Of a stretch of 64,000 nucleotides of DNA, positions 34,983-57,000 are shown one piece after another (positions within the stretch are counted from its first letter, which is position 1; every line of letters begins with the position of its first letter). The notes beneath the pieces are model-generated. The model did no database searches, was not told where the DNA came from, and saw nothing but the letters and a program-made list of their open reading frames with translations. Source of the stretch: Pocillopora damicornis (taxonomy: Eukaryota); assembly GCF_003704095.1 (NCBI RefSeq), contig NW_020845073.1, positions 744,001 through 808,000 on the forward strand. The letters run 5' to 3'. A program made the position numbers and the translations under genes.

Positions 34983-37900
34983 AGTGTCCCGTGCTACCTG
35001 ACAATGCATCTTTTCCTCGTAACCAAGATCTTCAGAATACCGATAAATGCCACAGAGTTGTGTCCATAGAGCTTCAAGCACTGTGTTAGCCAAGGAGACC
35101 ACCGTGAAGAGCTGTGTTTTACATTTTAACTTCCCTTGTGAAGCGCTATGATATCGTTTTAGGCTGAGTTGGTAGAAGAGTAATGGTTTGAGATCGGCCT
35201 TTGGCTTCATATGAAAAATATTTTCCCTTCTAAAAGGGTACAATTAAATTAAATTTAAGCTCATACTTAGAGCAATATAAATTATGAATGTCAGTTGTGC
35301 TCGGTGTCGGGCAAAAATTTGTACTAAAGAGAGAAGTATGCTTCACAATTTTGTAAACATTTTTGAGTGGTCTGACGTAGATGTTTCCATTTATGGTTCA
35401 CACCATTTCCTATGAAGTATGATTGAATTATCATAGAGTAATAGAGCAACTTGTAATTGAGTGTTGTAAGTAATCTGGGATTGCTTTGGTTTGGCTTGAC
35501 TTGTTCTATGATTGATGCAGAAAACTCACGCCACTTTCTAAACCAATCAGATTTAAAACTAAAACTAATCGCAACTTGGTCAGTCGCGTTTTCCCGCGCT
35601 TTACGCAGTTTGAATGTATCCTTATTGGCTCGCTGCGATATTTATATATATATTTCTTTTTTATTCGCTGTTGTGATTACTTTGGTTTCGGTTTTACGAC
35701 ACTCAATGGTAATCAGCGCTATTTATAGTGGCTTTGAGACTTTCTTAGATTTTGTTGGAAAAATTGGCATAATTTCTTCAGAAGAGGGAAGACATTTATC
35801 TTTCTTCTAAGAATGTCTCAAAACACTTCTTAAATGAGTTTTTCCTTGAAAGAGGCGTCCGCTAATATCTTTCAAAGTAGTTAATAATGAAACTGAAGTT
35901 ACTGCTGGGCAGTTAATCTTCTTATGGCTTTAAAGATTGAGAAATATCAAGATAAGCATAATTTTTGCTTAGTTCTCTTGTAAGCCTGCTTCTAAGACCA
36001 TCTGTGTCAGAACGGGCACATTTTTATCGGCGAAAGCTTTTTTAAGAAAATTATAGTTAAACATCTAATAAAGCCTAGTCATGTACAATTTAAGGCGTTC
36101 GATCAAAAGATTATTCTTGATAGCCCAAATTTAGGTCTGACTGGCAGAGCAAACTGAGATGAATTGTGGTAAAGAGGAGGGGGCCTGGTAAGTAAGTGGG
36201 TAGTTTTCGTCTAATGGCTGAATGCAAGTCCAGAGATCAGCCTTTGGAAGGGTTACGAGTCGAGTAGCGCGTTAGAGCTCTATTCTGTGTGTCCAAGTAA
36301 AAATATTCGTTTCCCTGGTATGTACTTTATTAAGTCAACCCTTTAACACCCCGAGGTAACTGTCATTTGATTTCTCCATGCGGTCCCAATGTAAAGATCG
36401 AATTCTCCTCTCTAATTTAGAATGACTTGGTAGAATTGTCAGTTGGTAGAATTACTGATTGGATCTTGAGAGTGAATGGGTTGAAAAGGACAGAAAAACG
36501 TTTCGGACCTTCTTTCTATCAGCTTTGCATAATGTACATGGTTTCTTTTGTGGGTACTATTTTAAAAGGAAAGGCACACTCTACGCTCTTAGTATGGTAA
36601 AACTATCTTACAGGTAAATTATTGCAGTGCAATCTGCCGAAAGCAAAGTATTTTTCGCATTTGTACAAATTGCCTTTAAATAAATGCAACGTACTTCTGT
36701 ATAGAACTTACTTCTTATTGGTCTCAGGTGTCATTTTGATGTTAACTTGTGTGAAATTTATTGAGTTAAATCTAAATCCAGAATCAAGTTTAAATGAAAG
36801 TCGGACGACCGACTTTCTCATCACAATTGGGGCAGGATCCGGTTAAATTTTAAACAGTGCGACAACTGCGATATAGCGATAGTAAAAAATGCTTTGGTTA
36901 TGTAATGATTTGTTGGTTATCACGGGGAATCCTGCGCCAAATTTGATAAATGTAGTGTATGTCGCTGGCATAGTGGTCCCACATCTCTGCTACAAAGGGC
37001 ACTCTACAGTATTGCCTTAATTGACACCAAACGCTCGAATTAGTGTTTGGGGCGCTTATTTCAAAGGGACACTTGTTTGCAGTCTTCTACCTTAGTAAGA
37101 CTTTGTCTTAGGTTCAAGTGAGCAAAACAAGTGATTCTTAAGAACATGACAAGAGCATAGATTTGATGTGGAACACAATTTGTATGCCAGGCGCAGATTT
37201 TTAGCGCGATTCACTGTTCGAAGTCCCAGTTAACCTGCAGATCTAGGTAAAGTCCAGGGTATAATTTTTTGCTAACGTCAAGTTCCATCGTCAAATATTT
37301 ACCAGCTCTAGGCGTCTAGAGCGGTCACATTTGTAAATAGATAGTATGCCTAAATACATTAAGTTTCACGGAATGTATTGCACGCCTTGCGCAAGAGACG
37401 GTCCGTCAACGCGCTGTCGGTAAGAATCGATTGTACGCATCGCCGTTTATTTCTCCTCTGTTGTTGCTCGCCGATAGAGAAAGTCGAATATAAGTAATTA
37501 TCAACATGGCTAAAAAAACAACTCGTTTTTTAAAAATTATTTCGCTTGCTTTTGGTCTGTTAAATAGATTACTAGTTTCCTAGTGGTATAATTGTCGCTG
37601 GGGACTGAGCTCTAGAAACTCCTTGTTAGGTCATTTGAATAATGGCCCAGTGTGCCCCTCGACGCTTTAGTGGAAAAGATGTCGGCAACTTTGTTGTTGT
37701 TTGAAGGCTTCTTGCAGGAGTATTTTGAATGAACTGCCGAAACCTCTCGCGCTGATGAATCAAAAAGCCGGTTTTGGTTGTTTGTTGTAATCATTGCCTT
37801 TCTGTTGAATTTTTTTCGTCGGTGAATGTTCAGTGTTTCGTGTCGCCGTACGCATCACCCCACGATTCTTTGTCGGTCTGCTTTTTCGGGAAGTGTAGGA

Positions 37901-38110
37901 GGTTTATTGGACAATTTTCGACCCTCTTGTGCTTGCCGACAATATAAACGTACAGACGTTTCTTTTGTGTGACAACTCTCTGAATACCGCCATACTTCAA
38001 CCGCTTATGAAGCGCTCTGGAAACCATTTTCATCACTGAGCATAACAACATTGGGAACATTTCAGCGACTGGAAGGATCGAAGTTTGGAAGCAAAGCGTT
38101 AGTACGTGAT

Positions 38111-41100
38111 ATGGAAATAGATGACATAGGTACGTCTTAACGGTGATGTATTCAGTTATTAGGTGTTGTGGCAACCGTCTTTTCAATTATGGTAACATTG
38201 CTAAAGTTTGCTTCGTCTTTCTTGTAGTAAGTACTATATGTGTAATTGAAGGTCGCGCGTGTCGAAGATATTCAAACGATCGCAATGTGTTCATATATCT
38301 GCAATTTTTCCTGTCAACGAGTTTCACAGATGTTTGTTTGACCTTGTCTCTGCGTTGAATGGCCTTCGTCGTTCTGGAGAGTTTTCGTTTTTAAGGTTAC
38401 TACTAGGGTTTTAAGCTTCAACGCGTTGTATTTGATCTAGTAAGCTTTGATGTTTCTCTTCGCCTTGTTTCATCTATCATGTTTGTCTCAACCTCTGAAA
38501 TTTTGACGCATTTTCCTAAACGTGTTTGGTCTGTCTTGACTCAAGCAAGACAGGTACTTGTCAGACAAGCACCATTCTGTAACAGCAAACATTCCATATA
38601 AGCCCATTACATGCCCTCTGCCTTCGTAAATATTTACTGTTTAAAGTTTCTAACTTCTTTTAAACCTGTCGCTAGTCACTCTTAAAAAAAGCATTTAAGG
38701 GTATAAAGATCTGTATATTCTATCATTCACTGACATTGTAGTCATTTAAGATAATTTCTGAAGTGCATAACTGCGTAGGAGAACGATTTTTTTGTTCATT
38801 TATGATTAGTGAAGACCAATTACAGTAATTAAAACTTTTTTCTTGATGTAAGATATGAAATTAAGCGTCAAAACTTGTCATCGTTGTTCTATGAAGGAGA
38901 TCAATAATCAGTTTGTTGTGCTGGTCTGATTGTGCTTTATCAGAAGCTCCACTTTCCTCTCAATCCTAAAAGTAGCTACCTCTAAAAAGTAGGTGTAAAT
39001 ATGATGCATGGAAAAAAGAAGCTGCCTCTGGAAAAGCATGCAATGACCTTGCAAAAGTAGTGACCTTAACACTTAAAACCCTTAGAGTGACTGGCATCAG
39101 ATTTCTCCTTACATTATCATCCCTGAATCACACATTAAGGTCATGAGAATAAAGGAAGTGATCACTAACCAAATAAGCTTTTGATTGGTAAACAAATTCT
39201 CCTTGTCGATACCTTAGGAAATGTATAAAGAGCAGTATGGAGAATATGCATACTGATTTTAGGGTGTAAAGGGTTAACAGCAGTTTTTGTTGTAAGCCAA
39301 GAAACAAGTACCTCCCATTTATATTTTTTCAGTTTGTTCCTACTTTTCTAATTTCTCATCAAAACATACACCAGGCTTTGTTCCAAAGCAGTTCTGTTTC
39401 CCCTTGAATGCATACAAGGGTGTATTCATTAACACAGTGTATTCTTTGTTTTACCTAGACGAGACATTCTTTGATAGAAACATAGATGAAATTGATGTGA
39501 GAGAAACTCCACAGTAAGTACATTTGGTTTTAGCATGTATTTATACCATCGTGTTAATGTTATATTATGTACATATATATATATTTGAACTTTGTTTTGA
39601 ATCAGTAGGATAGAAATGTCACTATAATTATTATCACTATATTCCAACATTTATTATGTTATAATGGAAACTGACATAAAGAAAGTTGTTTTTCATCTTT
39701 TCATGAGCATGAGACGAAGAAAAAATTCTGAGTCTTACACTTGTGACAAGACCAAAAACATCTTTCTCTATTTCTTTAATGAACTCAAAACTTACCATCT
39801 CTCTTATTCTATTTGAAACCAATATGTCATTTGACTTCATAAGCTTTTTTTTTTTTTGAGTGGCTTCCATACAGTCTATTAAATCTTAATTTATAACTTC
39901 ATTTTATATGTAGTCACTTCCCAAAGATAACCTTTCACTCCCAGGAGTGACCGATTAAGATTTTTTTCTTCAAGCATTATCAATATAATGTCAAGCGAAA
40001 GGGTGATTGGGCACCAAATTCTCAAAGCTTCAATTTGATGAAATGTTTTTCAGACTGTAAGGAAAAATTTTATTGAGATCTTGGGAGTGAAAGGGATATC
40101 TGTCATTTATAGTAAAGTTGCCTATGCTTACACAAGTAACGGGGTTTTCACTTGCAAGGAGATATGAAAAAGCCTTGGAATTGGCCTTGAGAGTAATGGT
40201 ATGAAGGGTCATAGAGAGCTATGGAAAACTATGGAATAATTGTTATCAGAGCAGTATAGCAATAAATACATTAAACAAAGGATGAGTGTCCTCATATTTT
40301 TGAAAAAGGTCACATCTTTAGTAAGTCAAATGAAAAGTTGAAAACATTGTGAATAAGGTCATGAATAGGCATTGAAGGAGGAGGAACCCTGATAAATAGT
40401 GAAAGTATTATCAAAATGAAGTCTACATTTTATAGATTTAAAGTGACAAATATAGGGCACTTTTTTCACCAGCCTGCAAGGTTTGTGTTTGTCTGGTAAA
40501 ATTGCTCATCCTCCATGCTAAGGAATCATGGGATTTGAGGATTGGTCATAGAAAGTTATATTCATAGAAAATGATTGAAAGTGAGGGTAATGATCCTTTT
40601 AGGAACAGTGAAAAAAGGAAATTTTTAATTGGTGATTGTTAAACATTATTCTGAAACAAATCTCATGATGTGAGGTCACGAAAAACCCATAAAACATTCA
40701 GAACAATCATGTTTTTTTTAAATGCATAAGAATGTGTAGGCTTATTAGGTTCTAGATTGTGATTCTTGTGATCTTTGTTTTTTAAAGCTGGGAACTTTCA
40801 GAGGAAGAAGAATCAGGAGGAAGTGATGTAGAGACATTGGTGAATCAACAACAGACTGGAGTAAGTATGACGGCAACTTTGACTATTTACTTTGGCATGG
40901 ACTGTGTATATATATATATAGGTAACCTTAGCGCAGTGCTTGGAGATTGAGAAAATTCTTGAAATTTATACTGAAATTGGATGAAGTTGAGGCTTTCTAA
41001 AACTTTGGAGAATTTTTGTAACCTTCTAAATGCTCTGAGAAAATTCCCTGCTGCCTTTGGATTGAAAAGAGAGCATCAACCATATTTACCCAATCTCATC

Positions 41101-44100
41101 CAAGAACAGCTTCAAAGATAATGCTCACAATGCCTATTTTTTTCATAAAAATTAATGTTTAACATATTTACTGTGCTGGATGCTGACCTATTCAGGTTTT
41201 TATTTGCATTGTTATCTTCGCTGGTCTGAGAAGTCGAGTCAGCTACTTTTACCATAGCCAGTGCAAAATTTCAATGATGCACAGTTGTGAGATGTGATTT
41301 ACTGTTTGGGCTGGAAATTACTCCCTTTTTCTTTGCCTAGCCTGAAAAATCAATAATATTTGAAAGCAGACTCTAATTAAAGTCACTTTCATTATGCTAC
41401 AATATTTATTTATAGAAGAGCTACTTGAAGTTCTTATTCAGCACACAAAAAAATACTGTTATCACATTTGTATTTTCTCTCTATAAACTAATTATTATTT
41501 CTCTAACTTGTGCATATTAATAGAAGAAAAAAGCAAGACAGCAGGTACCACATCAAGAGATGGCCCAAAGGAAAATTCCCACCTTACCACCCACATCTAA
41601 TCCAGGGAGAAACCTGCCTCTCAAACAAAATGGGTCCATTCCAAGTGTACCACAGACTCAAAGCCCTGCTATGAAAAGAAACTCTGATAATTCAGTTTCC
41701 TGTGGAAAAATACCCACTTTGCCTATGAATCCCAGTGTGGGAAAGAATGGTCAGGTGACAATGTCAGAGAAACAACCCATATCTCCAAGCTTGTACCGAC
41801 ATCCTCTGAAGAAGGAAAAAATTGATGCAATGGTGAAGGCCGCATACAATAATAAGGGAAATAGTGACTCTGTTAAGGTAATCAGGCTTTCTTGTATCTG
41901 CCAAATTTTGTGCATCTGTAACTTTTTACAATTTCAGTTTAATTGTCAATATGCTTGGCAAAGAGAATGTGGATAATGTACAACCAATTCTTAGTTTTAC
42001 AGACCTTTTACGAAACAAGTTAAAAATAGACACAGGGCAAAAAAATTGAACATTAGATTTTGGGTATGTGTATATTATAAAATGAAGTAGAGTATTGCAC
42101 ATTTTTATGTAGCCCAGCTATCACCACAGAGCTAAGAAAGCCTTTTTCTTCCTCCATAGGATTTTGGAGCCAGTGAAAGAGGAAAAATATCAGTTAAATC
42201 AAGCAAGAGTCAGGCTGCAGGAAACAGAGATAAAAAAGAAACTCTTGATGCTCGTATTTGGGATGAAGATGATGTGGATTCAGTGAAGGTAATGTTGTCA
42301 AATGTTAACTGATAAGTGTAAATGAACATGATTGTATTTTGTATCAAAGAAATAAAGTTTTTTTTTTTTTATATTTGGGGAAAATGTTGTTGCTGTTGCA
42401 TTATTATCTAATCAAGATATCGAACCCACTTTTATTTTGTAGGATTTTACAGGAAATGATCGCCAGAAGGAAGCAAAGTATATGGAGCGTACTGATGAGG
42501 CAATTTATCAGCGAGCTGCAGAGGAACACATTAGAAGACCGCCTCTTTGGCATGATGATGAGGTAGATTCTGTCAGGGTAGGTACTTGTCAAATGTAGTC
42601 CTTCTTATGCTTGGAATAAATTTAAAAATCCATGGTGGGAGATATACAATAGAAACTGTAGTTCTTTTACACTGTTCTTAATGTGATAATGTATTTTTTG
42701 ATGTAGTTTTTCCCACTCCTCTTGGTTTTAAGTTCTTTAAACATGGTGAAGATCCTGTGGGAAAAAAAAAACTTGATTATTATTGCCAAGAATACATCCA
42801 TTGTGCTACGTCTCTTCAAAACTCCATTTCCCTTTTTCACCATTATAGAAGCACATTACCTGTAACTCCAGAAGAGTATTTTCTAATTTTGAAATATTAT
42901 CCCTCAGGATTTCAGCCGTGTGTCTGGAAAACAAGAACCTCCATCAGGTTTAGCTAGTCAGCAACTGAGTAGGCTTCCTTCAGATGAGCACATATGTCTT
43001 TCTCCCCCCTGGAATGAAGAAGATGATGGACCTGTCAGGGTGGGTACATTGAATATACAGTACATTCTCTACACAGGTGTGCATGTGACTAACATTTTAG
43101 TCTCAGTAGATGTACTATATGGGCATGTGTGAGGGGCAGTGAGTCACTATTTTGTGTGAATGAAAACTTAACTGGAATTATTACTTAGTGAGATTGAAAC
43201 TTTGATTATCTTTCCAATCCTCAGCCATTTTATGGTTCCAAAATATTGTCAGAGGTGACTTGAGTTTGATTCAGGATTTTTTGTTTGTAACTTTGTGCAT
43301 AACTGTTTTTTTTTTAAGACAACAACAGTAACATGAAGTCAAAATCTTTATTTCCTTCAGCCATTTGTGACAGAAGAACCAGTTGCAAAGAACTTTAGCA
43401 TCAATAACATGGTGATAGAGGAACGTATGAGACAAGGACAGCCTCCCCCTTGGCATGAGGAAGATGAGAGAGATTCTACCAAGGTAGATACATATTTGTA
43501 CTGCACTCCAAAAGTAAAGTTATTCAGATTACTGATAGCATTGTCAACTTGAATATTATATGTACAAGCAGATATATTTCACAGAAACTCACTCAGCTGT
43601 GCAAGTTATTGGGGACATTCTTATTTTGCTCTGCTTTGCTTCCTGGTTTAGCTCCATGGTTACTGTGGGCGACTAGCGACAGATTCTATTTCTTTTTCTA
43701 TAATTTGATACGCTGCACATTACAGATGTTGTTGTTTTCACTTTGATATTCATGCACATGGTTTTAAACCGTTTCTCTGGTTTGTTGACTGTAACTTTAT
43801 CGACGTTTGATAATCAGTTGCCTGCATATAGAGAGAGCCAGCAGTCCGTATGGGTTTAACTTGATGTTTATGGTTAATTTTTTTTGTTTTACCTGCTGTA
43901 GGACTTTGCTGCCCAATATCGTAAAACAAGATCAATGGAAAACTCGCGCCGTCCTTCAGAAGAAAACATTTATCTGACTCCACCTTGGATGGAGGATGAT
44001 CGCCAGTCTTGTGGGGTGAGTACCTTCAATTGTCCACTTTGTAGGTAATTAATATTTGATAAACAACTAATTATTTTGCCAACCTGTGCTTGACTGTGCC

Positions 44101-47100
44101 CACTAAGTGCTGGTATCTAATTTGCTGCTGTGATTTATGATTTACAAACACCATAGTTCATCCTCTAAACGCAGTTATCAGTTTAATCGAGGCACTTGAA
44201 TTTTATAACATCTGCAAAAGGATCGGCAGCATATTAAAACTGGTTCTGCTTTTTTCGATTATATAGATAAGTGATTCCAAGCAAATCTTGCGATTTTTTT
44301 AGACATTTAGGACCTCAAGATGAATTTGTTGTGATTCAGTTTTATCCTTGGTTCAGTGATGGTTAATTTTTTGTTGCTTTTAAGTTCTTTTAACGCACTA
44401 TTAAAAGCACATAGGATAAATACAAATTTTAAACGAACGATGAGTTTGAGAGAGAGTATGTTAATAAGTTTTACCCTCAATCAGCTGTGAGGAGCCATTG
44501 CCGATAGTTAAAAACTTATAAACTCAACAATGTTTCAGCGTATTTATGTAATGCTGCTGTTAAAAATCTCACAGGGTCGGACCGGATCAGATCATTCTTC
44601 AAACCGATCGTACAGAATGACCCTGGAAGAACAGCGAGCTATTCAAGAGGAGGTCAGAAGCACAGGAATCGCAGAGGCAAGCGATAAAGTGCAAGTTCTC
44701 CGCGATGAAAAAGCCGCTGAGAAAACTGTTCAAGGAGTCGGACCACCTGTCCCGGGAGATAGTGGATTTTGTAGCGAGCAGGACCAGCATGCGCAGCAAG
44801 GACAAGGTATTCAGGCGCTTTACGTTTATCCTTTTTCGTTACCAGGAAGAGTAGTGGCACAACTGTCAGGGTGATGAAAATCAAGTCGGAGAAATTTTTT
44901 TTCGATCGTGTCATCAGACCGTCATCAAATTTTAAAGCCACTAATTCGAATCCAACAAGAGAATCACAGGGAACACGATTACATCTTTCTAAACATCTAA
45001 CAAAACAAATTTAACCATTTAGCAAATACATGTGCTTTGATATCGATTCATTAAGAGGACCATCGTTGGAATAAAACGATCAAATATCCACTGTGAAGTC
45101 TTGTCTAAATGCATCAGCCATGCTTTGTGAAAAATTGCCAGTGTTGTTTTAATGTACTAATGTGACTTGTTCCTCCACAGGACCCCCAGCTGATGGTGTA
45201 ACGAGTGAAGCTGTGCCACAGGGCGATCCACTAATTACCAAAGACATCGTTATCGTGGAGCCCCCGCAGGAAAAACAAACTCTTACTCAAGCCCAGGTCT
45301 CTAGTAAAGTTATGGCGGATACTTACAAGCCAGTTGCTTTGAATCCAGCTGACGATAGCAGGCTAGTCAATCAACCGTTACCTAGCAACAGGGATAGGCC
45401 GAGCAGATGCACTGGTCCACGTGAAGGGAGAAGTGGCCAAAACGAGAGAAATCATGGCGGCGTCGAAGGAGGAAACCATAATCGGGGCATCGCCAGGAGC
45501 ATCAGTCAGTCGAGTTTGGAAGCCATGTGTTATTCACCGCATGACGCTTTGGACGGCATGGAGACGTCCAGCCTGGTCAGTTTCGCCAGCACCGCGGCCA
45601 CTCACCACGACCTTGACACCCGAATCGACATGGTACAGTCTCTTTTGTCCATGCTAGGAACACATGACAAAGATGACATGTCACGAACTCTGTTGGCGAT
45701 GTCAAACAGCAAGGACAGTTGTGCAGCCATGAGGCAATCAGGATGTTTACCGCTTCTTATTGATCTGCTCCACGGTAAAGACTTTACGGACAAAAATTCG
45801 CGCCGTGAGGCTCGCGCGCGTGCTGGACTCGCTTTGCATAACATTGTCTACTCCAACGTGGAAGATAGGCGTGGTCGTCGCGAGATACGAGTTCTAAGAC
45901 TGCTGGAAATAGCGCGTGCGCACTGTGATGTTGTGCAGTTTAAAGGTTTAGCAGTACACCCCTGTGCGGAACGTTGGTATCCACCTCTGAGGGAATATGG
46001 GCCAGGTCCGGCCATTGCTGCCCTTATGAAGCTTTCGTTTGAAGAAGATCATCGCACGGCCATTTGCGAACTCGGTGGCCTTCAAGCTATCGCTGAACTC
46101 GTGCAGATCGATCACCAGGTGAATGGACAGTGCAAAGACTTCTACAGCATCAGTCTTCGTAAATATGCAGGCATGACAATTACCAATCTTACTTTCGGTA
46201 ATACGAAGAATAAGAGCTTGTTGTGCGGGATCCCAGGTGCTGTAGACGCCATTATCGCTCAGCTGAACACCATTGAAGAAGAAGAGATTATTCAAGTTTC
46301 TGCAAGTGTACTTAGAAACCTGTCTTGGAGAGCGGATGAATTTTGCCGCAAGACTCTTCGCGAAGCTGGTGCAGTGAAAGCGTTGTTGGCAGCGGCCCAA
46401 TCATTACAGGGCGAACCCGCCCTGAGAACAACCCTCAGTGCTCTTTGGAACCTGTCAGCTCATTGCTCGGATAACAAGGCAGAGATTTGTGCGGCACCAG
46501 GCGCCCTGAATTTCTTCGTCAGGTGTCTCAACTACTCGAGTCCCTCTGGTAACATTTCCGTGGTAGAGAGCAGCGGAGGAATTTTGAGGAATCTTTCGTC
46601 ACACATTGCCGTGCGTCCCGACTATCGTAAAACCCTCAGGGATTGCGGCTGCTTTCAGATAATGCTCACTCAACTACGTTCGCCAAGCCTAAGAGTCGTC
46701 AGTAATGTGTGTGGTGCCTTGTGGAACCTGTCGGCTCGGTGCGTCGAGGATCAGGAGCTCCTCTGGGAGCTCGGTGCTGTGTCTCTGTTCAAGTCGCTTA
46801 TCAATTCGAAGCACAAAGCCATTGCCCAGGCCTCAGCTGCAGCCTTACGAAATTTGATGGCTGTGAAGCCAGGAAGTTCTACTGATAACGAGTCAACATC
46901 ATCCCGTGCAGCCAGACACTATCGCAGTATGCCTGCGAATATGCGATCAGCAGAGGCACAAGCTAGAATTAAAAGTGATCCAGCTAGAGTGTTAAACAGT
47001 TCTTCGAGAACTCAGTCTCCAATACCCCAAGGCCAGGCTACCCAGCCTCCACTTTCCACGCGTCAAGCTGCAAAGCAGGATCACGAAGCTTCCTCTCACC

Positions 47101-48491
47101 CTGCAAATAATGTCCAACAATGTCCGCTACACCCCCATGGCCTTGTCTCTAAACAGACGGAAGACTTCAGATCGCAGCCTTCCTACTCCGCCGGTCAGGC
47201 TGGTATCGTCTCAGTCACAAGGCAAGATGTTGATGCCGCGTCACGTGTACAACAGTCTAGGAAAAAGAAAGTTGGATCTTCTGCCTCTCTCGCTCACTCG
47301 AGCTCAAGCTCCAACCATGGCGTTGTCCAGGATGTCGAGCCCAGTCCTTCCCTCCTACGGAGCAGATCAGATGTTGGTCCCAGGGTTCTGGCCGGTAGAC
47401 AACGGAGAGCTAAGGCACGAGGCGTTGACGCGAACAGTGTGGGCAGCGGAGCCTCTCTGGAGGGAAGACATGCTGCAAATTTTAAATGGAATCACAGCAA
47501 TGATTCACTGGCTAAGTATCGTCGCCAACCTCGCCGAGATGCCTCCGTGAGGCAGAATTACGAACGACCTGATGTCGATCCCCGTCATAGTGGACAAGCT
47601 ACCGAAAAGCGCCAACACACTCGTTCTTCGAGCGACGGCTGTGTGGTAATACCTCTATTGTGTGACTCGTACCCTTTACATGTATCACACAAACCCAAGA
47701 GAGACACATCAAGAGACAAGGGTTCTGGAGAGGCGTCTGTGATATCCAAGATCAGAAGTGTGGTACAGAAAAACTTTGAAGGAGGAGGCGGACACCCTCA
47801 GCAGTCAGTATCTCAGCAGGGAGAGACTACTTCCATGGTTTCCCCGTCTACAGTAAAAAGACTCAACCAGTGGGCTGAGGCATGTCCTGGAGAGACTTAC
47901 GAGATGACAGAGTTTGGGCTACAGGAAGAGAACTCCTCGAAAATACGTCAAGCGGTAAAGCAGCCCAGTACCTCGGATCAAATCTTCGCAAACATTGCGC
48001 GATCTGATCAGAAGCACTCAACACAGAAGTTCAAATCCTACCGTGACTCAGACAGTGACGCAGATACGGAGATCGCTATCGAAGGTGAACGAAACCTGTT
48101 CGGTCACCCTCGGAAAGTAATAGGTTATTTCGAGGTGGAAAATGCTTGGATTCAAAAACCAACATTCGAGGCTAATCCTTCTCGTTCAGCGGACACGGAG
48201 AGCGTTGCTTCATCAACTTGTAGCTGTGACCCAGTGGAGAATGTCTGGATTCGTCGTCCAGACGCCCAAAGCTCTACAAAAGGTAATTGTGGGAAGTGTA
48301 ATCGCAGTCGAGCCGTTAAGAATTCGGAAAAAAATATTCCTAAGAAACAGATGGTGAAAAGTAGACGAGATTCGACTGACTCTCCAATATCCAGCCCCAG
48401 CTTGCATCGTGTGTTCAAGAGCACGTCAGGGCGCGAACAGAAAAAGAATTCTGATTCAAGCAAAAGAGGAGTCAAAGTTACGTCGCTGTAA
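38111..48491 (+). CDS. APC: Adenomatous polyposis coli (APC) homologue, ~1535 aa. Proposed exons 38111-38129, 40802-40860, 41524-41877, 42160-42288, 42443-42577, 42908-43039, 43361-43483, 43902-44015, 44575-44806, 45181-48491
   Basis: The terminal exon encodes DMVQSLLSMLGTHDKDDMSRTLLAMSNSKDSCAAMRQSGCLPLLIDLLHG, RGRREIRVLRLLE, LMKLSFEEDHR...ELGGLQAIAEL, VLRNLSWRAD, LSALWNLSAHCSDNKAEIC and CGALWNLSARC, all very close to recalled APC ARM sequence. It ends VTSL* (human APC ends VTSV). Upstream exons splice in frame. The first two exons and the start codon are less certain. Confidence 0.88.
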
Positions 48492-48792
48492 GAAAGCCAT
48501 TCAATCTCACGCATGGAATTTTATGAAAAAATCAAGGAACAATTCCTTTTAAAGTGGTTTAATACATAGTTCATCATAATGGCAAAGTCTGTAGCTCATA
48601 TACTGAACACCTCTCGAGTGGTTTACATTATGAAAGGCTTTTGGTGTCAGCAAGTGGTAAATTTTCCTTAATGAGAACTCCGAAAGTTAACTTTATTCGT
48701 CAAGATCATCCTGATTGGCTGTTGATATCTGTTCAAGAAGGGATGTGGAGGGTATCAGGTGATTAAGTTGTGTCGAATACAAAATCACTGTA

Positions 48793-49325
48793 GATATATC
48801 TAGTGTTGCTATGTTAACGACAGCTTCTATTTGGGGGGAAAATATGCACGGATATTTGTCTGCGGATATTATCTGTTCCAAGATGCGAACAGTTTTCCGA
48901 GAACGAAGCTCGAGGAGATTTATATGGTTCGAGGAACAGATAATGTCCAAGGAACAGTATACGAGGATAATTTCGCTCATAGTAGAGGCTTTTGTGGTTA
49001 TTATCCTTCAAGTGTTTTGCAACGCGTGTGAAAAAATGTTTACAAACAGGGTACTGCTGCCGGTGTGGGGTGTTTTGTTTTTTATTCTCTTGTACGACTT
49101 AATGAACAAACAATTCTTTCCCTCCTTCAGTAACAACTACAAAACGCTCTCTCATTTTGAATTAAATTTTAAACGAGGATTTATGGTAGTGGACGTAAGG
49201 TTTAAAATTGGGGAACATCACTTGGGTGATATCCACGGATATCCCCCAGTTTTAGGTGGGAATATTCGGTCACGTTATTTTTAGACCAATCGCGCGCAAG
49301 CAAAAATAATCGATGGATCATAACG
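48793..49325 (+). mobile_element. Non-coding interspersed repeat inserted downstream of the APC stop codon (probable 3' UTR)
   Basis: Internally repeated GGATATT/ATCTGTTCC-GAACAGATAATGTCC inverted motifs. The ORFs over it (48811..49284 etc.) have no recognisable domain. Confidence 0.55.
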
Positions 49326-51055
49326 GTATATATTACATCATATACTCACAAATTATAATATATGGTCAAAGTTATTTGTATAAAACACCAGTCTTCTCAT
49401 CTTTTATGTGACAATGATTACAAGCTCATAAATTGCCTCATGGCTTAAATTGGTTTGAAGTTTGTTCAAGGCGTTGTTGGATTTAAATGTTGTCGTTAGC
49501 CACTGCTTTCGTTTGGAGGAGCTAGGAATGTTACCTTACGACGTTTGCATCCTCCAGGTAATTGGTAAAACATGCCAGAAATTAACGTGGACGCTAAAAC
49601 GCGGCGAGAATTTGGAACAGGCAGTGAATAGCGAACTTCTTAAGACTGAAGGTTTTTATCCTAACCTTTCACAAAAGCTTCTCTAATCACCTTCACCTTG
49701 TAGGCAAAGAAAAGTGGTTCAAAAGCCATCATTTTTTTTGTTATCTTCACGAGGTGTAACTGTTGCCTTTAGCTTCGTGTGCAATATTTGAAGATCAATA
49801 TTAACTTATTATTTTTGCAGAGTTAAGTTCAGAAGCTAAAGAGACGATAGTAATAAAAATTTAAATTATTTCTACTATGTGACTGTCTTTTCCTTGTACA
49901 GCTTCAGTGATCAAAATTCGGGTTGTTGGTGAAACCTTTTTAAAATCTGTTCGTTGTCACGTGTCATTAAATATGATTAAGTGAGAACTTTCGTTAGAGT
50001 ATGGATATAACAAAGCGTAATCAAAACTGCATGCTGAACAAATCGGAAAATATTTTTTAAGGACCTAATATTACATAAGTGGGAAAAGGTGAGCTAACAA
50101 GTCGCGATTAGTTGTTAGGTTAAAATACAGGCTCGATTATTTCGATCAAATCTTGGATAACTTTGGTCAATTGACGACTGCCTTCACCTAAAAACATCTA
50201 CTTGAAGGAGCCAACTGAATTGCACCCGGTCGAGATCAGCGAAAGCTGAAAGTTATTCCCTTCTGTATTTAGTTACCTATATGAAAATATTTTTCTTCAA
50301 GAAATTTTCGAAACTGTGACTGCGAAGATCCCTAACATAACCGTTCGTCGAATTTCTTCATACGAAATCATTCCATGTTTTAAGTTTCGTTTCAAGAGCG
50401 TTACAGCAAGGCCACTGTATGAGGTATGACGAAGTGATGTATGGGTAAACAACTTGCTATCTTGTACATAGTGAAGGAATTTTATTACCAATTTAAATTG
50501 GAGCAGGTCCACAGAATCACAGTGGAAACTGATTTTTCTTTTTAGTACATTAATAGCCTAGATTTCTGTGTTTGTCCAACATCATCGACAGAAAGGTAAT
50601 AGAGAAAGCAGCGAAATCACTATTTACTTTAGGCACTTCTAACGGTCAGAAATTAAAGTAACAAAATATAGCATCCTCGGCGAAATCTCACCAGTAGCCG
50701 AAAAATGTCCGACGTCATTTGGCTATTCGAGCTCCTGAAATATAGAGTTGCTTAGCAACGTCGATTCGTTTTTAGTCTCTTAAGCGAGGAATATTCTGAT
50801 GTCTGGGTGGAACGCTCGGATTCCCAAATTTTTCTGACTCTACTCCATATCCACGACTAGTATTTTAAAGTACAAATTACCACGCAATGCCCGCATAGTA
50901 TCCCTGACTCATCGCAATGAATTACAATATTTGTGAATTGTAGTAATTTTTTCCTGCCTATAAACTTGGGCAGAAATTACGCTTTTGAAATTCCTTTATA
51001 TAGCTAAATATAAATTGTCTTTCCTCTTATCAAGGACATTGATTCAATGATTTTT

Positions 51056-54000: not shown

Positions 54001-57000
54001 TTCCAAAGTGTTTTATTGGTTACTGAGCGTTTCTGCCTTGAAAATAATTCGAAATTTCTCAGACGAGGAATTTTCCGTTTGTAGGTTAATGCGCTCTTTA
54101 CTGACCTGAACCAGCAACAGACTCGATATCTTTAAGTACAAAAAAAATCACTGGTCCGTAAGATTTGACTTTGTGTTTTGTGTCCATCGAGCACTTGGAC
54201 AGCAAACTTGCTACACATCGAACGTACGACGCACGCTTTGCTGCTGTGTCCTGAAACAAGATAGAATTTTGGCTTGTTACTCGAAAATATTTGAAATGTT
54301 TATAATTTCCAAGTAACTTACACACAACTAACGATTATTAGCATTCCTGCCCATCTTGGATGGCAGGAAACTCAGGATGAGAACTCCCATAAAACATGGG
54401 GAAGGAAGGGTGTGTCATGCTTCTTGACTCTAACGATGAATTTCGCTCACGTTTTCGAAACGTCAGACCCTGTTATTGACAACAGTACTTTTCAGGACAA
54501 CGTTTCGCAAACGGACGATCAGACCACTTGATCGACTTCTTGAAACCGTGCACTCTAATTCAGAGCAAAGTAGGTTATCACCATGTCATACCTAAGACAT
54601 TAACTGCTCCCAGCTTGAGTAAAGATATGAAAAAAAAAAGAAGACTAGGCTTCCGTGGTCACAATCATGTTTCTACTCAATTCAGATCATGCCATGATAC
54701 CTTAGGGAGGTCAAAATTGTGCAATTTGTTGCACGCAGTTCTGCACTCGGGAATATGTACGAACGGGACAATTTGTCCCCACCGTGGGGGGGGGGGGGGN
54801 NNNNNNNNNAACCTCTAAAATTGCGTCTCGGTCAACCGCGATGGAGGGCTTTCATTCTGAAATTCTCTTTCCCTATTAGCAAAATTTCTGGTGAGGATGC
54901 CCATCTGCTATTTTCTCGACACGTTAAAATCTACGCTCTGGTTTGTACCGTTATTCCACCTATCACCAATTCTGGCTTATGTCTAAGAAGCTTGATGACA
55001 TGAGGAATGTTAAAATAGAAAACAATTAACAGGCCATTCTGCCCATTTTTAACAATCAGCACAGCAAAGGCATTTCAGAAGAAACTTACAGGGCGTGTAG
55101 GTTGCATGGAGCCATCTTCAGAGACTACAATTCCTGCAGCAGCTCTGATCAACCTAAAATAAAACAAAATACTCTAACACACCAACACACTATTAACTTA
55201 GTGTGCACCAACTACACCAGAGGCTAATTTGAAACCGCTGTCCTGTCTTGAGTAAGGACCGATTTGTTCAAACTGACCGAGACGACTACTGGAAATGTTT
55301 TTGAAAAAGCCTTCGGAAATCGAGGGATATATGTTTCTCTTCAATATATATCCCAACACCATTTCTTCAACCAATTCCAAATGGCTCTATTCATAACCAG
55401 GAAGTCTACCACAGTAAGATCACGAACAAACGGCCTTTTGTGTCGAAGCGGCTCATCAAACAGCAGTTACAAAAAGACGTTTTTGAAGTGAAAATCAGAT
55501 ATTGTCTTGAGAGTTATATTCATCGATAGATTGAAAAAACTGTGATGCCGGTAAAAGAACTGGAAGCATAATTTTCCAGGGTTTTGATTTCGTGTGGAAA
55601 AGCTAAGTTACTAACCTCAACGCATGCCAGATGCAAGATTTCTCGTCTAGCACCAACTCAGCCGAACCGTTATCAACTTGCCAAGAGACAACTTGCTCGA
55701 AAGTTCTGTGAAAATGAAAAAAAATGTCATTATTTTGTGGGATTTACTTCAGTTTGACAATTGGATTTTGCAAGACCAACCAAGGAAACAAAGATTTAGT
55801 TGACAACCAAAACAATCAAAACAAGACAAAACAAAAACCAACTTGCACTAAAGTGAGTATTCATTCTGCTTAATTCAATTGAATTCAATTGATGAGATGC
55901 TAACAAGCCGATTCATAGCTCTCCAAAGATCTAATCCCTCAAACTTAAAGTAGAATACCGGAAATCTAAAAGCAAAGCATTAGTTCAATACTTACCTTCC
56001 ATCAAGGTAATGCCAGGGAAATGCGAGAGCAACATTGAGCAACTCTGGCATCTTGGAACCCTGTAAACAGAACGTATCTTAAGTGTCTGATTCCAAATAT
56101 CTCAAAAAGAATTCTCCATCATAACCTCAGTCTCATTTCCTTGGTCCCCGAGGTGAGAACCTTCAATGTTACGTCTGTAGAAACCTTTGTTGGGGTATTC
56201 TCACAACCTACTTACTAACAAAAATGTAGATATAGTAAGGAGAAGGTGTACATTGATCATTTCTTGATGGAGAATAAGAGTTACACTTTTCCATCCGGGC
56301 TGACGTGACACCGTGTACTAAATCACAGCCAACCACAGCAAAAAGTACAACGTTCTTGAAGCATTCTATGTTACTTCTATGTCGCTAGTTGTTGCGCTAG
56401 AATTGTTTGGCAGTCCAGCGTAATATTCACGGCGCTGTAGTACGAGCAAGTCTCATTTTTTTCTTTCGCACTACTCTAGCAACGAGAATAGTTTTGTTCG
56501 CTTGACAGATTTTCACACCAAATGATTCATTTTGCGGTTCACCGGACACCGGTTTTTCTGCATGACGGGTCAGTTCATTTACCTGTACAGCCATGACTCC
56601 CTTCTCATTTGAAAACATGACCAATAGATGAAACAATGAAGAATGGAGACGAGTCACAGCCTCTGCGGTTTGACCCTCCCTAGATATAGAGAAATACGTG
56701 TAATTCCATTAAGTAAATTTAGAACACTCCTCGAAACGAACTTAAAGAGGGTGCAGTAAAATACTTTGACTGATCATGACCAGGTTACTAGTTTTTGCTC
56801 TTCTTAAAAACTGAAGAGGAAATACTCCCTTCATTTCTGCCTTGTGAGTATTTTGATGTTACCAACATCTTGGGTTTTTGTTTTTGTTCATGCACTTTAT
56901 GCAGTTGGTGAAGCATAGCATTTAGAGGAAGAACTTTACAGGGTCTAATTTAATTCTCTCTATCTCAGCTCCTGAAAAACGCTCAAGAAGCGACCCCGAA

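Follow-up and report, generated by a model that had tools for sequence, protein, structure and literature searches.

The 64,000-nucleotide (nt) stretch of the Pocillopora damicornis genome analysed here (contig NW_020845073.1, positions 744,001 to 808,000; we call the whole stretch the window, and all coordinates below are positions within it) contains a single-copy APC-like gene of this coral on the forward strand. The N-terminal half of its product is encoded by an array of related exons. The exon at 45181 matches the Pfam families Arm (E=8e-26) and APC_rep (E=2.5e-12), and the APC-type combination of these domains, together with orthology, places the protein among the APC and APC-like proteins (InterPro IPR026818). 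In a tree of ARM (armadillo) domains it groups with cnidarian APC-like proteins with a support of 100/100. A profile of the N-terminus searched against the 234-megabase assembly of the coral has the window locus as its sole match, exon by exon. The product of exon 11 shares 99% identity with the transcript-derived protein P0001 (1576 amino acids), a member of the same 90% identity cluster as the RefSeq protein XP_058943378.1 of Pocillopora verrucosa (1558 amino acids). The latter begins MEIDDI and contains every exon of the array gene, so the gene model is already public, as an "uncharacterized protein". The gene model itself is thus not new, and is annotated in RefSeq without a name.

The coding part of exon 1 (38111..38129) begins with the ATG at 38111 (i.e. 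MEIDDI), placed by mapping of the public transcript contig L001 and by direct reading. The 5′ untranslated region in this exon extends back to at least 37678, since the cDNA L001 maps to 37678-38129, and the RefSeq protein P0122 begins at the Met encoded at 38111. An ATG at 41560 was considered as the start codon and is ruled out, the true start being that at 38111 in an upstream exon. Residues 1-20 of P0001 (L001:391-450) are an artefact, because the open reading frame caller took a non-ATG start in the 5′ untranslated region; the orthologues and RefSeq begin MEIDDI or MEVDEI. Exon 2 (39459..39513, 55 nt; mapped by L001 and matched by the loose end of an RNA contig) encodes a conserved N-terminal module, DETFFDRNIDEIDVRETP. 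Exon 3 (40788..40860, 73 nt; RNA junctions and L001) opens with the first W-acidic copy, W-E-L-S-E-E-E-E. Exon 4 (41524..41877; RNA contigs and L001) encodes a poorly conserved Pro/Ser-rich linker followed by a helix, KEKIDAMVKAAY, for which the AlphaFold2 predicted local distance difference test score (pLDDT) is ~80, and ends in DSVK, the first half-motif of the array.

Five exons follow, each encoding one unit. Unit 1 (exon 5, 42160..42288, 129 nt, 43 amino acids; junctions in four RNA runs) begins with DF and ends W-D-E-D-D-V-D-S-V-K. Unit 2 (exon 6, 42443..42577, 135 nt, 45 amino acids) comprises DFTGND, an amphipathic helix, RPPLW, an acidic run and DSVR. In unit 3 (exon 7, 42908..43039, 132 nt, 44 amino acids) DFS is followed by SRLPSDEHICLSPPW, an acidic run and GPVR, while unit 4 (exon 8, 43361..43483, 123 nt, 41 amino acids) has a degenerate PF head, a short helix, PPPW, an acidic run and DSTK. 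Unit 5 (exon 9, 43902..44015, 114 nt, 38 amino acids), the last of the array, consists of DFAAQY, then SRRPSEENIYLTPPW and an acidic run. Exon 10 (44575..44806, 232 nt, phase 0 to 1) encodes a helical segment, TLEEQRAI and onwards, together with DSGFCSEQDQ. Exons 6 to 10 all have RNA junctions. The coding part of exon 11 (45181..48491; Pfam, the junction 44806|45181, and L001) provides a linker, the APC-type armadillo domain and a basic C-terminal region ending VTSL before the stop codon. Exons 5 to 9 are in phase 0 at both ends with AG/GT borders, and exon 10 joins 45181 in frame. An initial annotation made from the window alone had described an array of phase-0 exons here; their borders, lengths and phases are as it gave them, and the coordinates are now refined to 41524-44015 (i.e. 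exon 4 plus the five exons).

The joining of these exons is directly visible in RNA. Four RNA runs (X1, X6, X7 and X12, from four independent studies) were aligned over window positions 39700-45600, and all junctions are contained in single Logan RNA contigs of up to 9114 nt. These are 40860|41524 (41527 in one run), 41877|42160, 42288|42443, 42577|42908, 43039|43361, 43483|43902, 44015|44575 and 44806|45181, all GT..AG. Across RNA runs from corals and marine metatranscriptomes, 24-40% of the words in 41500-45400 are present, about the exonic share. The public contig L001 has the identical exon set on the window, and adds the 5′ end. The proposal that the array exons form the N-terminus of APC is borne out, since the contigs of all four studies join them to 44575-44806 and 45181, and they are not derived from a separate transcript. 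The acceptor of exon 4 is of the NAGNAG type (41521-41529): three runs splice from 40860 to 41524 and one to 41527, so that the exon opens with KKK or KK. The window exons were searched singly, and the contiguous protein was taken from public transcripts (L001-L006) and database proteins.

Since the five exons are symmetric, skipping of any of them would preserve the reading frame, and might tune the number of repeats as the initial annotation had suggested. No exon-skipped isoform was found in the contigs of the four RNA runs or among the members of the 90% identity cluster; assembled contigs show presence rather than isoform ratios, and rare skipped forms would be lost from them. The listed Pocillopora and Acropora cluster members differ by a few residues or are fragments. 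Unit 4 is absent only from a GenBank, non-RefSeq model of Acropora cervicornis (P0020), while the RefSeq proteins of A. millepora and A. muricata are full length (1527 amino acids). There is no indication of a recent change of copy number in the compared proteins.

The units share a common layout. Each starts with D/N-F/Y, often continues with S-R-x-P-S-x-E-x-I-x-L-(S/T)-P-P-W, and then has an acidic run and D-S-V-K/R. Every intron of the array splits the motif D-S-V-K/R | D/N-F/Y, and most units close in (S/T)PPW plus an acidic run. As one unit ends in DSVK and the next begins with DF, the composite motif (acidic run, DSVK|DF) becomes whole only when the two exons are spliced together. The pattern W.[DE][DE].{2,6}[KR][DNP][FY] occurs four times in the Pocillopora protein where 0.001 would be expected (5000 shuffles), and P[PL]W.[DE][DE] also four times where shuffles give 0.002. 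Among 52 instances of the head motif from 12 species, which are mutually non-independent, position 1 is D in 83%, position 2 is S in 73%, position 3 is V in 62%, position 4 is K/R in 90% and position 5 is D/N in 88%, position 6 being fixed as F/Y by the search pattern. The conservation of the D and F positions across Cnidaria that the initial annotation would require is therefore seen, with the aromatic residue set by the pattern. A sixth, more diverged copy of the W-acidic element, resembling that of unit 2, lies at the extreme N-terminus (exons 2 and 3) and reads RETPxW-E-L-S-E-E-E. Unit 2 is the best conserved of all, and is recognizable in Hydra and jellyfish; the core of unit 5 is identical in corals and Nematostella.

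We note that a core S-[RK]-[ILVR]-P-S-x-E recurs in units (window positions 42980-43010 and 43950-43985, and the medusozoan proteins P0121, P0252-P0254 and P0031). It bears a likeness to the SxIP core that binds EB1 and to a CK2-primed GSK3 site. In medusozoans three to four units carry the core, as SRIPS or SKIPS or, in a few of them, SRVPS or SRMQS, each then followed by a conserved SG-I/C-QTP tail. From the spacings S-x-x-D/E and S-x-x-x-S in DSVKD and SRxPSxE we infer only that they could fit CK2 and primed GSK3 sites.

Full-length APC-like proteins of five stony corals, Nematostella, two scyphozoans, three hydrozoans and the lineage of P0092 were compared, and the array is present in all the cnidarian APC-like proteins examined (stony corals, Nematostella, scyphozoans and hydrozoans). 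P0092 itself (locus L006, from a metagenome or transcriptome in ENA) has a compact array of three units, and lies on a very long branch on the cnidarian side of the ARM tree. Anthozoan units follow directly on one another, the W-acidic tail of each adjoining the DSVK|DF head of the next. Medusozoans have the same module with long linkers in between. As the medusozoan units are set apart in this way, the unit is DSVKDF...PPW, and the adjacency of the W-acidic element to DSVK is secondary.

The intron positions were compared between the Pocillopora window and the Rhopilema genome (locus L007). Five units of the jellyfish gene are interrupted at the coral position, a phase-0 intron with AG/GT borders separating K/R from D/N-F. 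This indicates that the exons were duplicated before anthozoans and medusozoans diverged. When the N-termini of Nematostella and Pocillopora are aligned with themselves by our own Smith-Waterman script, the unit-shifted alignments score 163-184, and the top internal repeat of the Nematostella N-terminus is residues 149-322 against 192-359. A BLAST self-comparison returned the diagonal only. A tandem repeat at the DNA level was sought in the array region and was not found, so that the duplication must be old. Homologous units, one per exon, are thus bounded by introns of the same phase at the same position in the motif. As the initial annotation had suggested from the exon translations, the array is on these comparisons a genuine tandem exon duplication with a motif assembled across phase-0 junctions, and an ancient one, older than the anthozoan-medusozoan split.

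Word-based searches with the coral and jellyfish arrays matched only cnidarian APC-like proteins. A profile search of 1.84 billion representative proteins gave two cnidarian APCs, one fragment of 362 amino acids, and 88 short proteins of 47-198 amino acids covering exon-sized stretches of the profile. Neither a sequence search of the PDB nor a look-alike search of the ESM Atlas with the array gave a usable match. Because the coral-heavy profile missed the proteins of jellyfish and Hydra, these searches do not prove that sponges, placozoans and ctenophores lack the array; the current picture, rather than proof, is that the array would be restricted to cnidarian APC.

Comparison of Pocillopora with Nematostella gives identities of 65% in the array, 79% in the ARM domain, 26-43% in the flanking linkers and 34% in the C-terminal region. 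By this measure the array is the most conserved part of the protein after the ARM domain, suggesting strong constraint since its origin. It is acidic, with an isoelectric point (pI) of 5.1, in contrast to the basic ARM domain (pI 8.8) and C-terminus (pI 9.9). AlphaFold2 models the 447-residue N-terminus at a mean pLDDT of 47 and predicts only isolated helices, which lie in exon 4, unit 2 (residues 215-241), units 4 and 5, and exon 10. This fits a predicted disordered region that would fold on binding. Exon 10 is a second conserved element, situated between the array and the ARM domain: its TLEEQRAI helix and DSGFCSEQDQ (44575-44806) are conserved from corals to jellyfish, with 50% identity to Rhopilema.

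An APC-like protein of this kind has recently been studied in Nematostella. NvAPC-like regulates Wnt/beta-catenin signalling (Sun et al. 2026, PMC13455636). Its in vitro binding is robust towards Nv-beta-catenin and weaker towards NvAxin and NvGSK3, and the protein has no 15-aa (amino acid), 20-aa or SAMP repeats (PMC13455636). In AlphaFold3 predictions the contact with beta-catenin fell in the first ARM repeat (residues 708-753), and an association of the Axin RGS domain with "Repeat 1", not "Repeat 2", of NvAPC-like was "strongly predicted" (PMC13455636). These N-terminal repeats were seen as SMART internal repeats, and are reported without coordinates, a motif, a definition of the unit, the exon structure or the phyletic range (PMC13455636). 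The top internal repeat found here in Nematostella makes it very probable that they correspond to the array. The sole structural hint in the literature on these repeats, itself a prediction, thus points to Axin and not to beta-catenin. In Hydra the ARM repeats of the APC-like protein have been reported to lie unusually far from the N-terminus, and the region preceding them is not described (Abbott and Nathke, bioRxiv 10.1101/2022.11.14.516391). The repeats had been glimpsed in one paper; new here are the definition of the unit, the logic of its exons, its phyletic range and the negative tests presented below.

Bilaterian APC proteins carry several families of partner-binding module that are missing here. 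On the window exons and the full natural proteins Pfam finds only Arm and APC_rep. The cnidarian APCs in the list of matches have no 15-aa, 20-aa, SAMP, EB1-binding, basic or N-terminal coiled-coil family, whereas bilaterian APCs in the same list carry 15-aa, 20-aa, SAMP, EB1-binding and N-terminal coiled-coil families. Mammal-like APC proteins are also among these matches. The array has the position upstream of the ARM domain that is taken in bilaterians by the N-terminal coiled-coil and oligomerization domains (PF16689 and PF11414). Both of these are absent from all cnidarian APCs in the list, and the prediction for the cnidarian region is disorder, not a coiled coil. The post-ARM region (46860-48491) is very basic (pI 9.9) and ends in VTSL; Pfam and custom hidden Markov models (HMMs) found no 15-aa, 20-aa or SAMP repeat in it.

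We propose that the array of ~40-residue, acidic (pI about 5) and intrinsically disordered units may act as a multivalent docking platform of short linear motifs. Docking would probably be regulated through phosphorylation of serine, and the platform would replace the bilaterian modules that are absent here (i.e. the N-terminal coiled coil and the 15-aa, 20-aa and SAMP repeats). The likeliest partners would be proteins of the destruction complex, and we regard an ancient multivalent docking array for such partners as rather probable. A more specific form is tentative: the array may have evolved independently as a set of acidic-aromatic motifs, modular by exon and regulated by phosphorylation, that bind beta-catenin and/or the Axin RGS domain, doing the job of the 15-aa, 20-aa and SAMP repeats from the N-terminal side of the ARM domain. 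Taking possible partners singly, and only roughly, beta-catenin bound in a non-canonical mode is somewhat unlikely and the Axin RGS domain slightly more so, the remaining probability falling to some other partner.

Some points weigh against this proposal. The published study of NvAPC-like (PMC13455636) gives no coordinates, so that it is from the sequence that we infer its "Repeat 1" and "Repeat 2" to be probably the array. The alignments behind the AlphaFold2 models of the N-terminus are shallow, with 6 to 14 informative rows (six for the 447-residue model), and the call of disorder is therefore soft. Conservation also reaches well beyond the short motifs, whole units being nearly invariant in anthozoans; this could reflect a long interface that folds upon binding, or a function unrelated to Wnt signalling.

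The array might alternatively be the cnidarian counterpart of the SAMP repeats (PF05924), at least one unit binding the RGS domain of Axin and so linking APC-like to Axin. SAMP binds the RGS domain as a helix, and amphipathic helices are present in unit 2 and in exon 4. Both are repeated elements of APC, and the published AlphaFold3 analysis pairs the NvAxin RGS domain with the N-terminal "Repeat 1", the top internal repeat of Nematostella being the array; moreover NvAPC-like and NvAxin interact in vitro although SAMP is absent (PMC13455636). The same study, however, has no such prediction for "Repeat 2", gives no coordinates, and reports a weak APC-Axin signal in vitro (PMC13455636). There is no sequence similarity to SAMP repeats, and the position in the protein is different. 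The Pfam SAMP family is absent, and our custom SAMP HMM gave nothing above noise on the cnidarian proteins (1.8 bits or less, as did a custom 20-aa HMM, PF05923), with positive controls of E=2e-32 for SAMP and 6e-54 for the 20-aa repeat. We consider this alternative unlikely.

The initial annotation had read the DSxK|DF motifs as ligands of the beta-catenin groove, equivalent to the bilaterian 15-aa repeats and placed ahead of the ARM domain. On this view the "charged button" Lys435 would be met by the first D, and the aromatic pocket filled by the F. Like the 15-aa and 20-aa repeats (PF05972 and PF05923), the units are present in multiple copies, acidic, Ser-containing and aromatic, in a disordered part of APC, with a D five residues before F/Y. 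The D at position 1, F/Y at position 6, acidic upstream flank, D/N at position 5 and frequent S/T at position 7 recall D-x-P-I-N-Y-S, and the D and F positions are kept from Hydra to corals. Full-length NvAPC-like also binds beta-catenin robustly without any known repeat (PMC13455636). The published AlphaFold3 model, however, puts the contact in the first ARM repeat and not in the N-terminal repeats.

Profile comparisons speak against this reading. The Pfam 15-aa family (APC_15aa, PF05972) has no match in the full natural proteins P0001, P0024 and P0031 even at E<=10. We constructed custom HMMs from 29 distinct 15-aa repeats of arthropod and fish APCs and from 31 distinct instances of the cnidarian motif, and with filters off there was no match in either direction. 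The 15-aa HMM scores at most -3.8 bits on the cnidarian N-termini, and the reverse HMM lands on no 15-aa repeat. The 15-aa core [DE]-x-P-[TI]-[ND]-Y-S-x-[KR]-Y is not present, as its Pro and its SxKY half are absent from the cnidarian motif. The consensus for ligands of the beta-catenin groove is DxΦΦxΩx2-7E (PMC8228192). Against this, D is found in 83% of the 52 instances and the first Φ is mostly V/I/T (with the aromatic set by the search pattern), but the second Φ, a position that must be hydrophobic, is K/R in 90%, and the downstream Glu is at no conserved distance.

A strict regular expression for the groove consensus recovers the bilaterian 15-aa and 20-aa repeats as a positive control, and has no match in Nematostella, Rhopilema or Hydra. 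Its sole match in the cnidarian APCs examined is DFAAQY...E in the head of unit 5 (43902-43940), in another register and in corals only. The "exact" fit of DSTKDFAAQY to the spacing of the 15-aa repeat claimed initially is likewise confined to corals; Nematostella and the medusozoans lack the second Y. Given the failure of the HMMs, Pfam and the consensus, the likeness comes down to an acidic residue placed five positions ahead of an aromatic one, within acidic surroundings. Every membership test of this reading that we ran was negative, so far as sequence can decide, and assignment of the array to a known family of APC repeats as a beta-catenin ligand of 15-aa type is rejected. The position given in the initial reading stands, the cnidarian array being N-terminal to the ARM domain where the bilaterian repeats are C-terminal to it; the likeness of the units to beta-catenin-binding repeats is not supported. 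The gene organization differs too, since the cnidarian units are ~40 residues long and each is on its own phase-0 exon. The human APC repeats lie inside one giant exon. As a reading of the array as a whole, canonical groove binding is decidedly improbable.

Tryptophan motifs could point to a function outside the destruction complex. The W-acidic motifs that bind kinesin light chain and the W-motifs of GW182 are repeated W residues with acidic or small flanks in disordered regions, which bind in a multivalent manner to the surfaces of repeat proteins. The array resembles these in having repeated W residues with acidic or small flanking residues in a disordered region. It might dock cytoskeletal or transport factors, for example with the W-acidic elements binding kinesin light chain and the SxIP-like S-R-I/L-P binding EB1, and so supply the cytoskeletal functions that belong to the C-terminus in bilaterian APC. 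The W-acidic element is present in six copies, S-[RK]-[ILV]-P-S is recurrent in medusozoan units and present once per anthozoan protein, and cnidarian APC lacks the Pfam EB1-binding and basic domains. Yet the cnidarian context is P-P-W-x-acidic, not L/M-x-W-D/E or G-W. The kinesin-light-chain pattern needs W-[DE], and W stands directly before D/E in just one or two of the six units. SxIP motifs usually have a basic context, whereas the SxIP-like cores of the array are in an acidic one. We find this explanation very doubtful.

Least probable of all is that the acidic array acts within APC, folding back on or bridging to the basic ARM groove or C-terminus in an autoinhibition, or a self-association that replaces the coiled coil: the charges are complementary (pI 5.1 against 8.8 and 9.9) and the array sits where the bilaterian oligomerization domains lie, but the consensus for ligands of the APC-ARM groove, XGGG[DE]xΦΦ (PMC4860839), is absent from the DSVK|DF units (S-G-G-S-D-V in exon 3 comes nearest, but is without the fourth Gly, the most conserved one), and with array and ARM domain in one chain AlphaFold2 gives a pLDDT above 90 for the ARM domain and 30-40 for the motif blocks, with no sign of docking.

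If the more specific, tentative form of the proposal holds and the array binds beta-catenin and/or the Axin RGS domain, it would explain how APC-like proteins that resemble oncogenic truncations still control beta-catenin. The binding sites of NvAPC-like were left open in the published work (PMC13455636), and the array is the only other strongly conserved part besides the ARM domain. It is modular and seemingly confined to the APC of cnidarians, and with its boundaries now resolved to single residues and exons in a dozen species it is a precise handle on the current question of where cnidarian APC-like proteins bind their partners. Should it bind neither beta-catenin nor Axin, the array would mark an ancient function of APC of another kind.

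Lastly we note some features of the window outside the coding sequence. The 3′ untranslated region is long (48492-49865 and beyond), as L001 continues to 49865 without splicing and the contig of 9114 nt from run X1 reaches ~7 kilobases beyond 45600. In intron 2, at 39700-39900, the summed contig depth is ~155-500 (bin mean), reaching up to ~2100 at single positions, in all four RNA runs. This stretch has many differing loose ends together with fixed differences, and looks like a dispersed repeat or transposon fragment transcribed from many loci. The window contains two runs of N, at 24218-24228 and 54799-54809.

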